Positions 8,746 through 21,031 of a stretch of DNA of 39,395 nucleotides are shown here, piece by piece. Within the stretch, counting starts at the first letter, position 1; each line of letters opens with the position of its first letter. The notes under the pieces were generated by a model. That model made no database searches. It saw nothing but the letters and a program-made list of their open reading frames with translations, and was not told the DNA's origin. Origin of the DNA: Ginkgo biloba (lineage: Eukaryota > Plantae > Ginkgophyta); NCBI GenBank assembly GCA_024626585.2, contig JANKJI020000001.1:3542760-3582154 (forward strand), given 5' to 3'. The translations under genes and the position numbers were made by a program.

Positions 8746-10130
8746 GGATGATTAGTTTTGGATGTCTTTTACTGCTGTGCCTTGCCTATTTTATAATCAT
8801 TATATGCTTATATGATTATATAGATTGTCACCTTTAATAGTAGATACAGGACACATTTCTACTGGCCAACTGTAATTTCAATGGTTGTGTCTTAACCAAC
8901 CTCTCCCACAAGGATACTTGGCCTCAGATTTCAGTCCTCTGAAATCTTTTCGTAAATAAACATTCATATCAACATGCTACTTACACATATCTTCAATAAA
9001 ACAAGAAAGAATCAAAGCTGATTTATTAAAATTGTAGCTCTTTCAAATCAAGTGCATCTGGATTTCTTCCTAGATGAAGCGAAGGTGGAATGGGATAAGC
9101 AAACAACAGAGTCATGTGGGACATGAATTTCAGCTTCTCCCAGAAACCACATGCATTGGGTAATTCATCCCTCTCTATCCCAAATAACNNNNNNNNNNGA
9201 TCAGGTAAATGAACCCCTAACAAAATAACAAACAGAATTTAGTCTGTCTCAAAGAGAATCTGATGTTGATGTAGGGCTCCAAGTGCCTTGTTGCCTATCT
9301 AATCTGACCTTCCTTGCACTTAATGCCTACTCAGATGTTGAGTATCTTTCAGTAGTGCATGTCATTCAACGAAGTGGTCCAAGTTCTCCCATATGTTATT
9401 ACACCCTTGTTTTGCTAGTTTCCTGTGGCTAGCCTTTTACATTCTTGCATTACCTTTGCATTGGTTGTACATGTAGGTAATCTGTGCATTCTTTCACAAG
9501 TGAAAGTTTCTCCTTCCATTTGATGTTTGTGTTATATTATCTTTCATCTCATTCCAGAGTGAGGGAAGGTCTGACCAACATCCAATTGACCTAAACATTC
9601 TCACTGAAATGGTTGATTTAGTGCGGTGCTTTTGGCATCATGTTACATGAGTTTCTGTGGAAATGAAAGCCTTGAATGTGCCTTGCTTGTTCAACACTGA
9701 GTGCACTGTTGGTAACTACATTGTTAGTGACAAGAAAATAGTAATTTTAAATGTATGGATGTTGCAGATAAATCAAGAGGTAAGTGACAGCAGACATCAA
9801 ACATGCCTTGGTTTCCAGAGTTTGCAATTCCAGCATTTTGTGAAACAGTACAACTCGTACCTTTTTCATCATTATGTTTTTGAGTTAAAAATGCTTCTGC
9901 AAGTTCAAACATATTAGCAAGTTACTGACTTTTTGCAGACCACTTTATTTTGAATGAAGTACTGTTTCAATTGATGTTAAGCGTTTGCATAGATTAAACA
10001 TTTAAGTATATTACGTTCAGGTCAATAGGTTATCTTGAATCTGGCAATGGGCGTTGTAACAGAGTTTTGTTGCTGTTATGATCCCAACTGATTATGTATT
10101 TTGATTTGCAATGTGCATTTTTCCTTGCAG

Positions 10131-10669
10131 CGCAGGAGTATAATAGAAAGAGAACAGTTGCCAAGGTCATCGTGGCTGCAAGTGCTAGAACCATCCAATG
10201 CAGAATTTATTGCAGCTTTAGCAGCTGGGAATAATTCTCATCATATTCTGCAGATTGGTTGTGGGCTTTCAACTATTGCTTTAGCAGCTGCTGCACGGGC
10301 TACAGGCTCCTGTCTGCTGTCAATACACACTGACAAAGATCAACAGGAAATTGTTAACAGTCATGTGAAGTATCTTGGTTTGGTAGAATACGTAAAGTTT
10401 ATCACAGATGAACCAAGTAATGTGGTACCTCAGCAAGATAGGGTTGATTTTGCCTTTATTTCAGGAAATCCAGAATGTTACATTGACTTATTTGACCTAC
10501 TGAGGCTGAAACATGGAGCCATTGTTGTAGCAAACAATGCACTTGATGAGGCAATAAATGAGTATATAAAGCATGTATGCAGACAATTGGGAATACATTC
10601 TTCTACCTTGACACTGGGCTGAGGTATTTAAGTTACAAAAATCACGTCCTGGGATAAATTCAAATTAGC
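10131..10669 (+). pseudogene. DUF1442-family (SAM-dependent methyltransferase-like fold) exon with two premature stops
   Basis: Acceptor ttttccttgcag at 10130 (phase 0). Reads LEPSNAEFIAALAAGNN...STIALAAAARATG...VDFAFI...GAIVVANNA, all DUF1442 hallmarks. The C-terminal motif reads TLG*GI*VTKI (family consensus approx. LPIGxGLEVTxI), with TGA at 10620 and TAA at 10629. Donor gc|GTATGT at 10670 (phase 2). The first exon was not found. Confidence 0.85.
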
Positions 10670-11124
10670 GTATGTTAATCATGCACACCAATTTTCACTT
10701 TTCGATAAACCCCAGTTTATTTGATGCTTCTGTAATGATTATGGTTCATTCAATCATAATATGTTCATGAAAGTATGTGGGGGCTTGCTTGCATAACATT
10801 AATTTGCACACTACTTTAATTTTACAGCAATGCACCCAAAATCATCTGCACACAGCCTACTGCATCAGCTGCTACAGAGCTTACACTTGAACTCTTTGAA
10901 TGATGCATTGACATACCTGGAAATGTGTAGGCTTGCCATTTTTAAGGTGGTGATAATCCAATTTGTTGGAGAATATGATCAATTCTGTTTTTGACTCGTC
11001 CATATGGTCAGATATAGTTTAGCCAAAGATTTGTAACTGCATCTTGCGTGCATTACCAGCAAAGGATGTTTTCAGTTGATTCAAGCTTACCTGGTTGGTC
11101 ATTCTGCCAATTAGAAGTTTAGAA

Positions 11125-11711
11125 AAATAGAAATAGAAATATATATTAATGTCCACTAGTGACCAAAAAGCAGTCAATGGGACTGAGAGTACAAACATAT
11201 GATACGACTCCAAGGGATTTCTGCTAACAACTCCAAGTCTAAATCTAAGAAACTATGAAATACAGTAGAGTAAAATAAAGCAAAGTGGTACATAGGATAC
11301 ATCCAAAAGTGGTGCTAGGGTTATTCCCTTCAAGTCTATAAAATGTCACCAAGGTCTGCATTGTGCTACTAGCACCACATGGGCTTATATGAGATAGGTC
11401 TACAAGTCATCCACAACTGTGTAGTCTCCCAAAGTCTATCAAATGATCTCATTGGCAGTCTGGTCATGAATGTGTCTAAATGGGGTTTGTCTCCATGGGT
11501 TGGGAAGGTTGACTGCTGTCTGCCTCACTCGAGGCAGTGTCTCTCCTACCATCTAAGGCTACTGCATCTGTGTCTCTTCCAAAGAAGTTGGTGATAGGTC
11601 TCTCTCTCTTGGGTTTGGGTCTTGGAGTCTTATAAGTGCTCCTCCTGATGTACCTAGTGGAGTGTCTTTTGGTGCTCTATAAGGGAGGATGGTAAGTAAT
11701 CCTGGTTTCCA
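11125..11711 (-). mobile_element. Dispersed repeat, probable 3' end of a LINE-like element (copy 1)
   Basis: TATATTAATGTCCACTAGTGACCAAAAAGCAGTCAATGGGACTGA closely matches ~25475-25520. Both copies are preceded on + by an A-rich short tandem repeat. Confidence 0.45.
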
Positions 11712-11811
11712 NNNNNNNNNNNNNNNNNNNNNNNNNNNNNNNNNNNNNNNNNNNNNNNNNNNNNNNNNNNNNNNNNNNNNNNNNNNNNNNNNNNNNNNNN
11801 NNNNNNNNNNN

Positions 11812-11970
11812 AAAAATTCTTCCTCAACGCCTTCTTAAACTCATTATAAAAAGTAATAGGCAACTATCAGTCCTATTCTCTGATCTTACAAAAAGACTCC
11901 CATAAAATTCATGATTTTAGGCCCATCCTCAACCTAAAAAATATTACTCTTTATTCACCTGTATAAGCTT
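11812..11970 (+). mobile_element. Degenerate LINE (L1-type) RT N-terminal fragment
   Basis: Reads SLILQKDSHKIHDFRPILNL, resembling the LIPK...DFRPISL motif. Confidence 0.4.
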
Positions 11971-13599
11971 AACAAGAAAAATATACCTCCAAATCTTTGA
12001 TCCAAGTCTCCAAAGACTCAACATCCATCCTTCAAACATCTTGATGTCAACCTTAGACTCTACTCAAAATGGATTATGTACCATAGGTTCTTTTGTTGAT
12101 GAAGAACCTATAAAATGAGGAATGTTATTTTACGAAGGGAATTGAACATTTAATAGAGGAGGAGGAATGGGTTATTGCCCCAAAGAGGAGACTGTTGTCA
12201 TAGATGCACTCAATGTAGATAGAGATTAATTAATCCTCCTAATATATGTTGAATCTCCTTCTAATCTTTCCTCATCTTCCTCATTTCCTTATCATATCCA
12301 AACATGAGTTATGGGTACCCTATTCATACCCCTCATTTTCACTTATCTCATCCTCCTATTCTTTTTAATTAGTAATGATTTTAAAATAACCTCTTGGAGA
12401 TTTTTCCCTCTCTCCTCTACCTTCCATTGTCCTTACATATTAACTTATAGTCCTTGATGCATTTCAAGTGGATACCATATAAAAAAATAAGAAAATTTAG
12501 AAAATGGATAAAAATGGTAAAAGGGAATCCCTCAATAAGTTCATAACTACCATGGCTAAGTTATTTTAACTAAACACGTATACTTATTGCAAGAAATCCA
12601 TATTACAAATTCAAGCCATCTAATACACCAATAAAAAAACTAGCCTTTCATTTGAGGAAATTCATCTTACTAAAGCAAGCCATCTAACACACTAATAAAT
12701 AATCTATTAATATAACTACAAGTAATATAACTTACTATGAGCAAGCTAGCCAACACACCAATAAGAGGAAGAAGTGAAAGTCTTAATAACAAAGTCATAA
12801 CCTACTTTTATATCAAATAATGTACCCTCTTAGTAATTAGAGGATTGATCAAAGTATGTGGAAGGTTAGGTCAAAATCCAAGGGGATAATCTATTACGCA
12901 CTCTTTGTATTCTAGGATACACTAGAAAACTCAACTATCTACCAAACTATATAGTTAAAATAGCTATTTGTATGGTGATATTCCTAATACCATGTTATCA
13001 CATATAGTTGGAATGAATATTGTGTTAATGCATGCTCCTAGGGAATGCACTTACGTGGCACCATATTTATGTAATGTAAAAATATGGTATGGTGCATAAA
13101 AATGTGGTTCCCTCTACAACATGGCCTAAACTATGAACAATGATTCTTGAACACATATTCCTTCTATACTTAGCCACAAAATGACCCATACTTATCTTGA
13201 AAACCTATCAAATCACCTAAAAAATATCCTACATTATATTTTATACATTCATGGAGATTCGATTACCAATATCTATCACAATCATTAAAATATTATAAGA
13301 TAAATCAAAGAAAGAACCATTCACAACATATTGGAAAAATAAGAAGCTCTCTTTATTTCCAAAGTATATAAATACAATCAAGAATAGAAAGTATAAAGAA
13401 GTGCATGAGAATACACCCAATGCTCTNNNNNNNNNNNNNNNNNACAAATAGTAGATCCCTTGAAAATATTCCATATAATATTTATTGGATATGTGTTGTA
13501 TAATTTTCTTATTTTATAACAATATAGATGTTACACCCCTATAGACTATACATCCCACCATAATATGAGGGTTTGGAAAGAATAATGTCTCAAAGTCTC

Positions 13600-14180
13600 T
13601 AAAGAAAGAAGAATAATCAAAGCAGGATGAAGCAGAAAAGGTTCGCTTTGAGTTAAAAGATGAAGATTTTGCATTTGAATATGAATCAGTAGAAGAAGAT
13701 AAACCTACTGAGGAAGAACCTTAGACTCTAGTCTTAATGAGATCAATTTGGAAGAGAAGACAACCTAAAAGGTATATCGCACTTGGTTTTTATTTTTATT
13801 TATTTTTATTTACTACTGATGATGATCCTAAAATGTTATGGAGGCACTTGATTCAATGGAAGGTAACTTATGGAAGAAGGCCATGGATGAAGAGATGATA
13901 GCCTTGGACAAGAATATGATATGGGATTTGGTCAAGTTTCCTATTCAAAGAAATCCTATTGGTAATAAATGGTTGTTCAAGAATAAGTTCAGTGTAGAGG
14001 GTAAAGTGGAGAAGTATAAATCTCGCTTGGTATAAAGGGATATTCCCAAGTGGAGGGAATTAATTTTGGTGAAATTTTTTCTCCTATTGTTAATTTAAGT
14101 TCTAGTAGATTTCTTTTGGTTGTTATTGGTGCTTTTGATTTTGACATAGAAAATATGGATATGGAGACAACATTTCTTCA
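13600..14180 (+). mobile_element. Ty1/copia pol fragment (integrase-RT linker and RT N-terminus), degenerate
   Basis: Reads RRQPKRY...DDP..MEALDSMEGNLWKKAMDEEMIALDKNMIWDLV...IGNKWLFK...VEKYKSRLV*REYSQVEGINFGEIFSP...MDMETTFL (RVT_2 motifs), with stops and frameshifts. Confidence 0.95.
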
Positions 14181-15570
14181 AACCCTACCTCATTCGACAT
14201 AATCAAAATGCAACACAATATCGAGATCTCCTATATATCTTGTATCACGTACAAGATAGGCTACTTTTCTTTAAAAATCAATTTTGCATTCCAAGTGATA
14301 CAAAACTCCTCAAACAGATAAAATGTTACAAGTCATTGATAGTCACACATTGTGACATTTACAAGACATACCTCTTCATTATGTCATCCTCGTATTGGCC
14401 AAACGTGAAGATTGATATCAATTCTTTGTGAAGCACTATTATGCAAAGTTGAAGGGAAGCTTCTAGCAAGACTTGCTGCAACCACTAGATATCCCACACG
14501 AATGATGGGAGAGTGTATCTTTGGATCTATAACCAATTTACCTTAATCAAATCCTCATAATTACCAGATTCTTGTAGTTGTTGATCAATTATCTAAATGG
14601 CCCATTTCATTACATGCAAAATGACACACATTGGTCATCGCATTGCCAAATTATTTTTAAAATATATTTTTTGTTTCCATGATTTACCTTACTCTATTAT
14701 TTATGATCACAAACAAAAATTACTTGGCAAGTATCTTATTGAAATCCTTCGGAACCCAACTCAATTTCAGCTCTTCCTACCTTCTAGAATATGATGGCCA
14801 GCTAGAATGAGTTACTCGAGTTTTATAAGATATGTTACAGAATTATGTCCACATAATTTAGTGTCTCAAAAAGATTACTAACACCTTGTTGAATTTTCTT
14901 ACAAAGTTTTTTTACCATAAATCGACCAAAGTAACCCCCTTACAAGCCACCTATGGCAAGAATCACTCCGATCGTCGCCTCAAACTGGATCATCGAAGGC
15001 AAACCATTTGAAACCATGAACAATTGGACATCATGAAAGACATCACTCTACAAACTCAAGATAAGATTGCTCCAGCATAGGCAGTTGATAAACACCAAGC
15101 CGTCAAACATTTGAATCAACATAATGATCAAGTGTTTTCATGTGTCACTTCCATCGTTATAAAGTAGCCATCTCAGTCCACTCTAAATTATAACCTTGTT
15201 TTTGTTGATTCGAAATGATTCATAAGAATTTTCCAACCAGCTATACACTAAGCTTGCCACCAACATGGGAAAAATCCACCCACTTTTTGCATCCCATGGT
15301 TGAAGCCATATTGTCCCCCAAAGGTCAATAATGATTTGGTTCCAAAATTTCTGAAAATAAAGTTGTATTAGCAACAGTGATAGAAATCGTCGAACACCGG
15401 ACACAAACCTTATGTTATTGAGTCATCAAGGAATATGTTGCCTAACGTAAGGCCACCCAGTAAGCAAAGCCATGTTGAACAAGAGATGCAAGCTTATACC
15501 AGTTTTGTCCAAAAATTTATTGCATCATTGGATATAACGGGGACATTGCTTTTAAAGATGAGGAATATGT
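14181..15570 (+). mobile_element. Ty3/gypsy integrase region through the PPT, degenerate (chromovirus-like)
   Basis: Reads LLFFKNQFCIP, YKTY...YWPN, LLQPLDIP..WESVSLD, ILVVVDQLS-MAHFI, GTQLNFSSSY..DGQLE. Ends with GGGACATTGCTTTTAAAGATGAGGAATA (PPT-like) followed by TGT at 15568, the expected start of the 3' LTR. Confidence 0.9.
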
Positions 15571-16370
15571 AAAAGAGTAATTAACTTATTTAAATCGCCT
15601 AATACTTTAGGCCGAAGTGTTCTGTTCCCATGGTTGGACACAACCTAACCTTTCCACCCATATATGATCTCGTACATTGTATTGTGTATTTATCAGTTGG
15701 ATTCCAGTCATCCAAGCATTGAGAACCACCCAATACTTGCAATGTTTCTTATTTCAATTGTATGAATGCCCTCAGCTAACATTGTGCGCATGCATGTCCA
15801 AGATCAGCCACAAGCTTGATCTCTAGTCCAATCTAGTTAATGGAAACGAGATCTGCCCATTTACATCATAAATCATGGGTCTTTGGATTATGTTGTGCCA
15901 CATGATTGAGAAGTTCGTTGAGAAGCAAGTTAGGGAGATTCATTAGATCCTGGGCAAGGTTGACAAAAGCACTTTGAGGAGAGCACAATGGATGCAGAGG
16001 ATGAAAAGAAGAGAATGAAACAAGAAATGGCATAGAAGTCAACAAGGGAGGAATTTGAACAAAATACAACGAAATCCATGCCAAAGAAAAGCAGCAAATG
16101 CATGAGAAGCTCACTAAAGCTGTTGTAGATAACTTTCTGGTTGACGGCAATTGGAAAAAGGCTTCAACTAAAATAAATGCAAATGGCTGCCTAAATAATA
16201 GTTCTGTAATGGTTTCTTAGATAAGTTGAGCTATTGGTACTTGACAACGACAAGGGCTAATTGACAGTTAACGTTGGACATACATGATGATGACTTGATG
16301 CTAACAACTAGATTTTGGCAGGACTTGTTGATGACACAAATCATAGCCAATAGCACAGCCATCTCCTTAA

Positions 16371-16606
16371 GCTGCTTGATCGACCAATACAGAATGATTA
16401 CATGGCCAGAGGTTTTTGTGAGTAGATGTTGGTTTCAACGCACAAGTGGCTAAACATTCCCATGCCTGCTCTTCTTTTGACATAATTCTGGCTGCTTGAT
16501 CAACCAATACAGAATGATTACGTGGCCAGAGGTTTTTGTGAGTAGATGTATGTTTTAACGCACAAGTGGCTAAATATTCCCATGCCTTTGTTTCGACATA
16601 ATTCTG
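16371..16606. repeat. Tandem duplication, two copies of ~120 bp
   Basis: GCTGCTTGATC...GACATAATTCTG at 16371-16490 and 16491-16606, with high identity. Confidence 0.95.
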
Positions 16607-17628
16607 AACCTCCCTAGCACACGCAAGATTATCCCTAATTGCTTGTTCTGGAGGATTTTTGACACTTATATTCTACTGATTCGGCTATGTTAAAGATTGA
16701 TGTTTCCATTATTTCCTTCATCCATTTTAACATTTGTCCATATGGGAATGATTCCATGTGTACGTTTCCCACGATCTTTCGTGGGACTTTCTACAGTTGC
16801 ATCCTTTGGTATTTCCTTGTATGTTTTTGGAAAAGAAATACTCTCACTTGGGTCTAATTTCTCTTTTACCAAAGGAGGTCTAATTAACTCTCTTATATTT
16901 TTTCTCCTGAACATTTTGTGAAGTCCCAAACAAAAATTTGTTTCACTTGAAGCAATAGCATTGACATATGTTGTTTCTACGGCCTCAGATTGACTAGTAG
17001 AAGCTGGTTATTTTTTAGTTTTTCCTGAATACATCCCATGGGGCATTCGCTCTAGCATAGATCACTTGTGGAGTGTTAGGACAAGGACAGTCTCTGAGAT
17101 AATGATGGCATGTAACTATGCTTTCCTTACATACTACCAGGGTGTTCAGAATTCGGTCCTTCCAATGAATCATAGTGATGAAGATTATAGAAGAAATTAT
17201 TTGCACTTTAGAAGGGGCAAAATTCTGTTAATTTTGGTTGATGGTTTGTTACAATTTGTGTTAGTGAACGTTTAAGCATTTCTGAGGTTTGTTTCTACCA
17301 ATCATTAGTGTAATAAGTTTTGTATAGTCTTTCTGCAACAGTGAGGCTTTGAACACAAGTTTTCAAAATGGAATAACATGTTTTTGTGAAACAAGTCTTT
17401 CATAGGTTGCTAGTTTGAAGCCTTCCAGCTGAGTCTTAATACAGAACCTAATGTAACTTTAGCAGCTACATGTCAAAGAAATCATTTCTTGTTGTTTTAT
17501 GTCAAATTTACTCTGTATAAAAGGTAGTGGCCAAAAACCCGTGTCCAAAATTCTGCTGCAAGTTTCTCTCATATTGCAGGCATTTCATTAAACATATATC
17601 TGATATGTTTGTATGAACATTTGTGCAG

Positions 17629-18413
17629 GAGAGTGTTTTATTATCAAATTGGGCAAGAAAGGGATGAAGTCAACAATGGCTGTAACTATCAGGATATGAT
17701 CTTACCAGGTGGATCATTCCCTTCTATTTCTTGTAGCAAGCTAAACTGTCCTGCAAATGACAGCCAACTGAAAGATTCGGCTCAATTCAAGGATAATGCT
17801 ACCAAAAGAAATGCCAAAATAGATAATCTCATTTCTGCACCCCCCTTTCAAATGGCTGATGAACCCGAAGGTTCAAGGCATGGGGGATATTTGGAAGGGC
17901 TGGTGACAAAACCAAATGGTTCCAATCTTTGTCCATATTCAATAGAGGACGAAGGAACTTGCTCAGACAATTGCAAACTCCCAGAAACTTCAGAGCGGTT
18001 AGATTCTATCATTAATGGCGAAGAACAGGAAGGCTGTTATATGTCTGTTGAATCATGTGGGTATGATTCTGTATTGCCCATAGAGAAGGCAGTATCTTTG
18101 GATAGAAAATCACTTAAAGTTGAAAGTCTGCTAGGGACTGGAATGGCTGAGGCAACTTCTGCTCAAGCTGTGTCAAGAGATCTGGTTCAAGACTCTAACA
18201 TCTATTAGCAGTTGGAACCCCTGAACGGCAATTTGAGGATTCGAGAACAATTGAATACGAATCTGAACCAGAACCAGAACATATGAATAGCAGCATTTGT
18301 TTTCAGATTCGTTTTAGAAATGATACATCACAGACGGAAGTTTTCATTGAGGGACCTGATCAGGACATGCTTGTGACTGATATCACCACGGCATTTAATG
18401 AAATGGGCATTAG
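17629..18413 (+). pseudogene. Large internal exon: S/E/D-rich linker plus N-terminal half of an ACT domain, with a frameshift at ~18197-18207
   Basis: Acceptor ttgtgcag at 17628 (phase 2). The frame is open to TAG at 18206. The -1 frame from 18199 reads HLLAVG...CFQIRFRNDTSQTEVFIEGPDQDMLVTDITTAFNEMGI. Donor AG|GTCTGT at 18414. Confidence 0.75.
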
Positions 18414-18650
18414 GTCTGTATTGCAGATTACAGCTGAATAAGAAAAACCAAAGCATGAAAATTCCAATTTTTATTGCACTGTCATTGAACTGTATAGTGG
18501 CGAGTTATTACATATCATTGAATATGTCAAATATTGCCAAATTATTGCTTTCATAAAATGAATAGATTCAAGTTTGGAATGATGCTTTTGAAGCTCTGTT
18601 TGTGATTATGCCTGACTCTGCAACCTAACTTGCTCACATTTCTCCTGCAG

Positions 18651-18813
18651 TGTACAGAAAGCCAGGATTGCAACCAAAGAAAAATGTATTGAAGATGTTT
18701 TCTATGTCATTGATGCAGAGACTGAGGCTCCTTTGGATCCTTCTGTATGGGATACTGTGAGGGAAAGAATGTTGCAGAGGATTCTTTTGCATAGAAAAGC
18801 TGCAGAGGAGTGA
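18651..18813 (+). pseudogene. Terminal exon completing an ACT domain (ACR/GlnD type)
   Basis: Branch-like CCTAAC and acceptor tttctcctgcag at 18650. It splices in frame to give MGI-S-VQKARIATKEKCIEDVFYVIDAETEAPLDPSVWDTVRERMLQRILLHRKAAEE*. The joined motif D..G/ML..DI..AF..MGISV..A.I.T....EDVFYV.D is typical of ACR/GlnD ACT domains. Confidence 0.85.
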
Positions 18814-20342
18814 GGTTTGATGGCACATCATATGAATCTGTTAGCATGGTTTCTGTAATTTTCTGGGACATATATTTTATTTGTTCCACTGTAAAAATTG
18901 CTGTTTTTTTTGTCAATTAGAAAACATCTGAGCTTGTAGATTAGGCTGAAATCTAACTCCAGGAGGGAGGGAATATCCATTATAATATGTTTGTAGTTTG
19001 CTCCCATCTGGGGGCACTTTTGCTCAAGATGCATCTGTAAGAATAACAAAATTTATTTAGCGTACAAAACATGGTGGCAAGCTCACTCATTTAACATGTT
19101 TTGTAGAGATGGTTTGCTGGCTTCCTTTTTACAACTTTTGCCAGCCAATATGAATCATTAAACATCACTATGTTGATCGATGGACATGGTGACAGTGACC
19201 TTCCTGCTTATTTCAACTATGATCAAGGACAATGCATTGTTTTAGTAGTATGCATCTCTGTCAAGGAGAGGATTCATATAACTTTAGACATGCTCACAAG
19301 ATCCCATCAATCCATTGTGGGGTTTGCAAATCTTTTACCCACACTCAGATTCATTGCATGTTTTGCTTCCCTGGCTCCTATGGCATTTTCACCCCTGATA
19401 TAGTGGATGGCCATCACATTTTCAGTGACATTTACAAAAATAGTTTTCGTAAATAGTTCAAAAATAAAAACCTTGCCATTATAAAGCTAGATGAGGTCTA
19501 TGACATTAGAAAATTCTATCCCTTTCAGCTTTATTCTAATTGCTGAAAGGTATATGACAGCGGTACCTCATCATTAATTGCTAACATGTTATTATGCCTG
19601 CCGAAGGTAGGGAATTGTAGGAATTTTTTTTCTAATCATTCGCTTATGTTTTTAGTCAATCATAACCATTTATTATTAGATGTTAAGATTTTTAAAATTT
19701 GATAGGTTTATTGAAAACTTAGCTATTTATTTTAGAAAAATATAATATTATTAATGTTCAAAATGATTTGGCCATGGATAATCAAATGACAATTTTAGCC
19801 TTCTTATTGTCCATTTAAAAAGAAATGCAAAATCTTGCCATGCCAATTCAATTGATATTTTAGTGTTGATATTTGACAAGTGGCATGCAATATTTATTGT
19901 AGATCATTACATATTAAAGTAATGATATTCTTATTAAAAACACATCACTAGAGTAATTGATGTTTCAGTTCAATTTGGAGACAAGAAACTTTTAGTCACA
20001 TTAAGTATGATTGACTTATGAATACGGTAGGATAGTAGCATAAAATGAAAGACAAAAGCAAAGCGAGAGTATTTCTTTTATTATGTTGTATTGTTGTATC
20101 GTCCAAAACTTTGTCATTGATATTGCATTTTTTCAATTGCTTCTTAATGCTCTAGTCTAAGTCACAAGGTTTGTTGATTTTTAAGAAAAAATGATTTTTG
20201 GGCGATTTTTAGGTACGACCGAAAAATAAAAAAAAAAATATTNNNNNNNNNNNNNNNNNNNNNNNNNNNNNNNNNNNNNNNNNNNNNNNNNNNNNNNNNN
20301 NNNNNNNNNNNNNNNNNNNNNNNNNNNNNNNNNNNNNNNNNN

Positions 20343-21031
20343 GTTCTATGGTTGTCAAAGAAGAAGCCAAAACTGTGCCGCTAGAGGCTAACCGCTACTG
20401 CAAATTAACCAGAGACCACTCAGCCTTTCTACGTTGTCTCCTCTACTCAATTTTATCCGTTCGTGGATATGTTTTTGGCTCATTAAAAATGGGAGTGTGT
20501 TTGTATGCATCAGAATCAGGAAATAGACAACCATGCGGGAATCTAGGAATGAGATGCGGTTTTTCCTAACTATAAGAAACTAGGAGTGGGTTCTCGTTTT
20601 CTTACCATAGGAAACTACAGCATGGGCCGGGCGAATGGAATTTCTTTTGCGCAATTTATGTACTGCATGATTTCGTGCAAGGTTCCGGAACGTGAGAGGC
20701 TGTGATTAACATCAAAGGTGCCTTCAAATCCCTGTGCAGAGTTTAAATCCTCCATTACCTGTATAACATCAAAGACATTACAGTGTGTTCTACTAGCTAG
20801 ATTAGCATAGTAATGCGCAGCTCTGCCAAAGTCTCCGAGGTAACGAACTGCAATATCTGCCAGGGCTTCCAGTGCGGATTGCTGGAAGCATTGAAACCCC
20901 GCACGTTCACATATTTGGCCAACTGCGATTTTAGCAACGGCACGACCAAACGCATCTCCACCTGCAGTAGCTGCTTCATTGGGTTTCTCTTTTGCTCCTG
21001 CTCCTCTTTCTCCACCATTGTTCATACTCAT
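20343..21031 (-). pseudogene. TAF8: TFIID subunit 8 (TAF8) pseudogene: bromodomain-associated histone fold plus TAF8_C region
   Basis: Reads DAFGRAVAKIAVGQICE...FQQSALEALADIAVRYLGDFGRAAHYYANLASRTHCNVFDVIQ...EIPFARP. Beyond the annotated stop it continues *FPMVRKREPTPSFL*LG...*IPAWLS/FPDSDAYKHTPIFNE...DKIE*RRQRRKAEWSLVNLQ*RL. TAG stops lie at 20615, 20570, 20543, 20443 and 20395, with a frameshift near 20524. It runs into a gap. Confidence 0.93.

Follow-up and report, generated by a model that had tools for sequence, protein, structure and literature searches.

Within a 39,395-nt stretch of the Ginkgo biloba genome (assembly GCA_024626585.2, contig JANKJI020000001.1, positions 3,542,760 to 3,582,154; hereafter "the window", numbered from its first letter), we identified a gene in which an exon encoding a DUF1442-type, methyltransferase-fold domain is spliced across an intron of ~7 kb to exons encoding a linker and an ACT-like domain. 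Transcripts carry this splice. Taking sequence identity, gene structure and conservation jointly, the gene is very probably a four-exon copy of Gb_31211, a G. biloba gene of a conserved land-plant family. Compared with the expressed version, the window copy is defective: it has two nonsense codons and a one-base deletion. The fused family is known as sequence and its gene models are public; its function is uncharacterized.

Transcripts join the methyltransferase exon to the ACT-like end

A first-pass annotation, made from the letters of the window, had proposed a phase-2 donor at 10670, a phase-2 acceptor opening an exon at 17629, and a join between the two. In the DNA, the last two bases of the methyltransferase exon belong to a split codon and are followed by the donor GT at 10670-71, and an AG at 17627-28 precedes an exon whose start at 17629 requires exactly such an upstream exon, ending with two codon bases. 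We mapped RNA on positions 13444-19300, using two polyA RNA-seq runs as raw reads (X20 and X21) and two runs as contigs (X1 and X4). By depth, transcription covers 17629-18413 and runs from 18651 to at least 19300 in the four runs; contig pieces of 787 nt and 762 nt cover exon 3, which has spliced ends in all of them. Sequences whose match starts at 17628 carry one and the same 30-letter overhang in 4/4 runs (agreement 1; 8 reads in X20, 15 reads in X21, and contigs in X1 and X4). This overhang matches window positions 10639-10668 with 3 mismatches, and matches nowhere else in the window. As this is where the methyltransferase exon ends, the 10669^17629 splice is present in transcripts: this splice, across a ~7-kb intron bearing transposable elements, is used in vivo, and the RNA check proposed with the join bears it out. 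The junction in the RNA reads ...SWNEFKSG|RVFYYQ..., in the predicted phase. Upstream of 17628, one contig of 2402 nt extends 1640 nt and another 529 nt, leaving room for exon 2 and more. No polyA-RNA depth was found across 13444-17559 in X20 and X21.

The intron at 18414-18650 is removed as a GT..AG joint in 4/4 runs. A minor alternative acceptor, with an exon start at 18719 (joint 18411>18717, 4 reads each in X20 and X21), shortens exon 4 by 68 nt and would leave the ACT-like domain truncated. One X1 contig of low depth keeps intron 3 (6, versus 93 for the spliced form). Exon 4 and the following untranslated region (UTR) are covered by a 652-nt contig piece with 0 differences to the window. 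At position 18903 in the 3' UTR, a G/T variant is seen in about half of the X20 reads and is nearly absent in X21; this is ordinary heterozygosity of the expressed locus.

An intact public protein, Gb_31211, holds both domains

The top match of the methyltransferase exon in a HMMER search of 1.84 billion representatives, at 94% identity, was G. biloba Gb_31211 (P0032 in our homologue set; EukProt EP01018 P035938). In this 516-aa protein, a DUF1442 / family-3 O-methyltransferase-like domain at the N-terminus is followed by a variable, disordered linker and, at the C-terminus, an ACT-like domain; across the exon junction the protein reads ...GRGIEVTKITSWNEFKSG|RVFYYQ... before continuing into the linker and the ACT-like end. 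It has the gene structure and junction of the window copy, is identical in exon 4 and is ~92% identical at the protein level over exons 1-2. It differs in having neither the window's TGA and TAA in exon 2, where it has Arg and Glu, nor the one-base deletion in exon 3. RNA variants at 17949/50, 18173-18197 and 18373 give exactly the Gb_31211 residues.

We searched the window exons singly and aligned them to Gb_31211 as separate pieces, with the public protein as a stand-in for the full-length product. Exon 1 aligns to residues 4-21 with 1 difference. Exon 2 shows 13 differences over 178 aligned residues (both stops counted), plus the last two junction codons, and exon 3 aligns to residues 202-462 with 5 amino-acid differences and a frameshift. 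Exon 4 aligns to residues 464-516 with 0 differences. The start codon of the window copy lies inside the short first exon, 9803-9856; the public protein begins three codons upstream (MSNM...), and the window has ACA at 9794-96.

Relatives of the fused protein in non-flowering land plants

The 13 best HMMER matches (E<1e-30) are mostly 367-518 aa long with the methyltransferase domain N-terminal, and come from Taxus, Psilotum, Adiantum, Ceratopteris, Selaginella, Physcomitrium and Riccia; further members were found in Cryptomeria, Marchantia, Ceratodon and Adiantum capillus-veneris (second search). They represent conifers (Taxus chinensis, Cryptomeria japonica and a conifer-like 512-aa protein, P0182), ferns (Psilotum, two species of Adiantum, and Ceratopteris), lycophytes (Selaginella), mosses (Physcomitrium, with several paralogues, and Ceratodon) and liverworts (Marchantia and two species of Riccia). 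The Cryptomeria japonica model, of 396 aa, aligned over ~55% of Gb_31211 and has a putative ACT end. Single proteins with both domains were thus found by homologue search in the groups where the first-pass annotation had proposed to look for them and, judged by sequence, gymnosperms, ferns, lycophytes and bryophytes have conserved the fused architecture. No angiosperm protein was among the named matches of either homologue search, in agreement with the suspected absence from that group.

UniRef labels many members "ACT domain-containing protein". Such entries include Physcomitrium XP_024374539.1, Selaginella XP_002986563.1, Marchantia MPTK1_1g22520, Ceratopteris KAH7439125.1, Riccia KAL2652020.1, Taxus KAH9318066.1 and Cryptomeria SUGI_1028410. 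The first-pass annotation had not recognized the architecture, which Gb_31211 and many NCBI and UniProt entries already have. The non-flowering entries share a DUF1442-type N-terminus, with the methyltransferase domain 55-78% identical, a W-x-x-F-x-x-G-R junction motif, a variable linker and one ACT-like module. They differ in the length and sequence of the linker (proteins of 377-557 aa), and some models are partial or ACT-less. Over 11 species sequences, the C-terminal module has a mean column identity of 57%. Literature searches on the fused family and on Gb_31211 found no paper.

Shorter forms also occur. The zygnematophyte alga Spirogloea has the methyltransferase domain and the junction motif with no clear ACT end, Diphasiastrum has a protein of 186 aa, and ACT-less isoforms occur in the conifer-like cluster. 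In that cluster, drawn from JGI and Logan transcripts, an isoform of 406-414 aa (P0033 and P0184) stops just before the ACT-like domain and has another short tail, and the 512-aa isoform P0182 has the ACT-like domain; ACT-less isoforms may be a regular feature of the fused family. Canonical short DUF1442 proteins (PF07279; Canavalia P0029 and Marchantia P0052) share the fold family, the STIALAAAAR helix and the LP-x-G-K/R-G-x-E-V/I-T strand, but lack the G-x-G of motif I and the ACT-like domain, are 33-39% identical and are kept in angiosperms. Because Marchantia has both types, the short proteins form a separate, more distant lineage. A 3093-aa protein from the fish Channa striata, annotated as hypothetical (P0044), also matches the methyltransferase exon in 34 separate stretches (E 2e-26); this looks like a repeat or an oddity of assembly or annotation and not a relative.

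The window copy is broken

The methyltransferase exon had been described as running to its donor without a natural stop. Its frame instead reads ...STLTLG, TGA (10620-22), GI, TAA (10629-31), VTKITSWDKFKLA. Both stops fall in the conserved LPLGRGIEVT strand: the TGA sits at the Arg, which is invariant in the fused clade and Lys or Asn in outgroups, and the TAA at the Glu, invariant in 17/17 aligned sequences. In exon 3, the exon itself and the Ser/Glu/Asp-rich composition of the ~230-aa linker hold up, and the single open frame does not. The linker frame closes at TAG 18206-08, the ACT-like frame is offset by one base, and one C is missing after 18197, so that a continuous protein needs three repairs. 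The extra C is present in 16/17 and 6/7 RNA reads and in both contig runs; it puts the linker and the ACT-like domain of the transcripts back in a single open frame.

Further departures of the reads from the window lie at 17949/50, 18173, 18174, 18177, 18189, 18193 and 18373. The five positions from 18173 to 18193, together with the missing C, make up a patch of the window at 18173-18208. The X4 contig keeps the window T at 18173 and has an additional change at 18106. At site 17949, 31/31 reads (X20 and X21 together) show the non-window version, and at no diagnostic site in the mapped range did we see the window version in RNA reads. The window also alters positions that are invariant among orthologues: R and P of HVRRQPG (R>C, P>L), P of LPLG (P>T), R and E of GRGIEVT, G of SGR, and the second L of the ACT-like MLL (L>V). 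Organellar-style U-to-C editing of the stops was considered and rejected, since this is a spliced nuclear gene whose transcripts also depart from the window at many sites other than the stops.

The fragmentary paralogue Gb_18766 (P0031, 153 aa) hops between frames and corresponds to the linker exon only (window 17690-18205). It has the ending ...SRDLVQDSNIY-stop in common with the window. A word search with the linker exon, subject to a length filter, returned this paralogue alone. Given its fragmentary state, at least one dead copy of the linker exon exists elsewhere in the genome. No contigs encoding Gb_31211 or the 52-aa ACT open reading frame (ORF) of the window were on record in a contig lookup.

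Two accounts of this damage deserve weight. We consider the chances evenly balanced that the window holds a real degenerating duplicate, or a null haplotype, of Gb_31211 that is unexpressed and whose patches were perhaps gene-converted from an older pseudogene such as Gb_18766. The damage fits such a history, since it extends beyond insertions and deletions to at least 21 amino-acid changes relative to Gb_31211, nearly all non-synonymous and many at invariant positions. The window shares with Gb_18766 both the patch at 18173-18205 and the Asp at 17949/50, and the absence of the window version from the RNA reads at every diagnostic site points the same way. Run X15 contains 100% of the sampled words of 17300-19100, against 0.85-0.89 in the resequencing runs X16-X19, but X15 may be the source sample of the assembly, which would make this support non-independent. 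Exon 4 with its UTR (652 nt) and ~2.3 kb of intron contigs from X4 match the window exactly or almost exactly, which is unexpected for a paralogue whose exon 2 is at least 3% divergent.

The same agreement would be natural if the window were the Gb_31211 locus itself, with the stops and the frameshift as assembly artefacts, arising from a patchwise consensus of paralogous or pseudogene reads or from base errors in a draft rich in gaps; we place this at slightly under an even chance. The differences cluster in exonic patches, the unique intron and UTR agree with independent runs, and the 39-kb window contains 28 runs of N, many of them exactly 100 long. Against an artefact, Gb_31211 was predicted intact from a same-species assembly and, if this was the same base assembly, an intact locus lies elsewhere; moreover, the window's R and Q in 18173-18193 also occur in the conifer orthologue P0182 (PRYLVQD), making them plausible real alleles and not errors.

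Predicted properties of the two domains

Searched alone against Pfam, exon 2 scored 28.3 bits with Methyltransf_24, 25.2 bits with DUF1442 and 24.4 bits with Methyltransf_3. The DUF1442 score lies just under the cut-off of 27 bits for PF07279, which is exceeded by Gb_31211 (42 bits) and its orthologues (33.7-49 bits); Gb_31211 also passes the Methyltransf_3 cut-off (23.5 versus 22 bits). An AlphaFold2 model of the N-terminal domain of Gb_31211 (predicted local distance difference test, pLDDT, 91.6) has the family-3 class I methyltransferase fold. The top 50 Foldseek matches are all family-3 O-methyltransferases (E 5e-12 to 4e-10), among them Rv0187, TrmR (YrrM of B. subtilis), CCoAOMT and COMT. 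By sequence, the nearest solved chain is 8c9v (E 4.7e-06).

Catalytic, metal-binding and ribose-binding residues are assigned from COMT and CCoAOMT. In the HMMER alignment, FISGNP lies opposite FIDADK of 7cvu, so that neither the catalytic Lys nor the first metal-binding Asp is kept. At this Asp/Lys motif, land-plant fused members read [ST/L]-G-x-P/A/T, Diphasiastrum has TDEP, and bacterial relatives have IDCEK. The ribose-binding Glu at the end of strand 2, kept in 8c9v, 7cvu and bacterial relatives, is replaced by His in Ginkgo; in other members N, D, A or S takes its place. Most fused members keep the Asp-Asn pair, and the G-x-G of motif I is kept as well. On alignment evidence, then, the fused clade lacks the Lys for catalysis, one Asp of the metal site and the Glu that binds ribose. 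Bacterial COG4122 "YrrM"-type and family-3 enzymes (TrmR 5zw3, 8c9v, COMT, CCoAOMT) resemble the plant domain in structure (Foldseek E ~1e-11, template-modelling (TM) score 0.6-0.77), and identity to metagenomic relatives of ~190 aa is 43%. The bacterial proteins differ in keeping the Lys, the first Asp and the Glu, and in lacking the linker and ACT-like extension of the plant clade.

For the C-terminal domain, the separate window ACT exons (43 aa and 53 aa) and the linker exon gave no Pfam matches. Single ACT exons are too short for Pfam, and we therefore used the full-length public protein. The top two Foldseek matches of the domain are to 9c7n (GL3; TM by target 0.69-0.76), and 9c7o (maize R) is also matched (TM by target 0.70). 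Next come the ligand-binding ACT domains of PGDH (phosphoglycerate dehydrogenase), SerB2 and Ser33. The predicted fold has the ACT-like topology of bHLH (basic helix-loop-helix) proteins, described in PMC10175843. DRPGLL is the ligand-site motif of GlnD and ACR proteins (PMC10175843); the corresponding loop here is D/N-Q/R-x-M/L-L-L, without the Gly, in 11/11 members. PF22754 scores 13.4-19.1 bits, under its cut-off of 27.6, and no bHLH is present. ACR proteins have two to four tandem ACT domains, and we find one C-terminal module. The C-terminal splice described by the first-pass annotation (18413|18651) therefore stands in four runs, while its assignment to the ACR/GlnD type gives way to a single bHLH-like module. 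The ACT-like domains of bHLH proteins (GL3 9c7n and maize R 9c7o; PMC8202348, PMC10175843) are the best structural matches and share a degenerate DRPGLL. They differ in that identity is 8-12% and that the module here is joined to a methyltransferase fold and not to a bHLH, and any dimerization here is putative.

Possible functions of the fused protein

Loss of the catalytic Lys, the metal-binding Asp and the ribose-binding Glu makes a classical cation-dependent O-methyltransferase less likely. The methyltransferase-fold domain would more probably be a binding or scaffolding pseudo-enzyme, or an enzyme of altered chemistry. Likewise, the resemblance to bHLH-type domains together with the missing ligand-site Gly favors association, and the ACT-like domain would more probably mediate self- or partner-association than amino-acid sensing. 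We tentatively suggest, from alignments and predicted models, that Gb_31211 and its relatives may be non-classical or inactive methyltransferase-fold proteins whose ACT-like end could mediate association. A fuller history, which we regard as rather unlikely in all its parts, would have an ancient streptophyte pseudo-methyltransferase gain an ACR-derived ACT-like module in early land plants and then be lost in angiosperms, serving as a regulatory scaffold that binds S-adenosylmethionine (SAM), S-adenosylhomocysteine (SAH) or a substrate and not as an enzyme, with the window copy as a recent patch-converted pseudogene.

The first-pass annotation had instead suggested a metabolite-regulated methyltransferase-like protein. 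An active SAM-dependent enzyme switched by a small molecule, such as an amino acid, at its ACT domain would account for the retained class I fold and G-x-G of motif I, for the Asp-Asn pair kept in most members, and for the structural matches of the C-terminal fold to ligand-binding domains of PGDH, SerB2 and Ser33. This proposal is weakened by the replacement of the catalytic Lys and first metal Asp in land-plant fused members and of the ribose Glu by H, N, D, A or S, by the absence of the DRPGLL-site Gly in 11/11 members, and by a topology and top structural matches of the dimerizing bHLH ACT-like type; we consider it improbable.

Several points weigh against a two-domain associating protein, or against its assignment to the window. 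The evidence for lost catalytic residues consists of alignments and a predicted model. Pfam ACT (PF01842) falls under its cut-off of 27 bits in 10/10 scanned members (15.9-24.7 bits in nine members, with P0182 at 20.3 and Gb_31211 at 17.8), and the Foldseek E-values for the small ACT-like domain are weak (6e-4). A homodimer prediction with two copies of Gb_31211 residues 420-516 scored 0.02, a value that counts neither way. RNA mapping spanned 13444-19300, and exons 1 and 2 of the window lie outside that range. The overhang departs from the window at 3/30 letters and at the last exon base, and the transcripts may therefore derive from another locus or haplotype. Finally, two assembly gaps separate exon 2 from exon 3 in the window, so that their physical connection depends on scaffolding.

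That the halves are two unrelated genes, a short methyltransferase ending at TGA 10620 or in a nearby exon plus a separate ACT gene, draws on the in-frame stops before the donor, on homologues of 186-190 aa in Diphasiastrum and bacteria and on the ACT-less isoforms P0033 and P0184, but is very improbable given the methyltransferase-exon overhang at 17628 in 4/4 runs, the 2402-nt contig reaching 1640 nt upstream, and the single 516-aa protein and land-plant orthologues that hold both domains; the separate transcripts that would have undone the original proposal are contradicted by the same overhang and protein.

Layout of the locus

The features of the window copy are listed in Table 1. Both assembly gaps (11712-11811 and 13427-13443) lie within intron 2; the reading frame is therefore unaffected, and the length of the intron is only nominal. 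In run X4, the copia reverse-transcriptase fragment at 13640-14031 has a contig depth of 27-94, versus 1-7 in the remaining intron; from this depth, elements related to the fragment are transcribed somewhere in the genome. Downstream, a 138-aa ORF on the minus strand (20615-21031) encodes a Bromo_TP domain (bromodomain-associated, TAF8-like histone fold; E 1.9e-21), and is probably the first exon of an opposite-strand neighbor gene that converges on the 3' end of the fusion gene.

Table 1. Exons, introns and retrotransposon fragments of the window copy.
Feature	Position	Strand	Content and support
Exon 1, coding part	9803..9856	+	MPWFPEFAIPAFCETVQL; donor GT 9857; tblastn with homologues P0001, P0003, P0004
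Intron 1	9857..10130	+	GT..AG, phase 0; inferred from sequence and Gb_31211 continuity ...VQL|RRSII...
Exon 2	10131..10669	+	Family-3 O-methyltransferase-like / DUF1442 domain; Pfam, homologues
Intron 2	10670..17628	+	~7 kb; holds both assembly gaps and retrotransposon fragments
Ty1/copia reverse-transcriptase fragments, degenerate	13838-14199	+	Pfam RVT_2, E 2.5e-07 and 9.1e-05
Integrase zinc-finger fragment, weak	14240-14428	+	Pfam Integrase_H2C2, E 0.0058
Exon 3	17629..18413	+	Ser/Asp/Glu-rich linker, poorly conserved, and first half of ACT-like domain (from ~18283)
Intron 3	18414..18650	+	GT..AG, within ACT-like domain; joints 18411>18649 (cut +2), 4 RNA runs
Exon 4	18651..19300	+	Coding 18651-18813: second half of ACT-like domain (codons 18652-18810), stop TGA 18811-13; then 3' UTR to at least 19300

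Implications

The gene model, the architecture and the orthologues described here are already public. For this gap-rich assembly, the locus illustrates that a gene which looks broken may also exist in an intact form that is expressed, and that reads are needed before a pseudogene is claimed. The family itself is an RNA-supported two-domain protein, kept in all major non-flowering land-plant lineages and not found in flowering plants, with no published function. The loss of catalytic residues suggests a pseudo-enzyme and, if this is so, the interpretation of DUF1442-type proteins would change.

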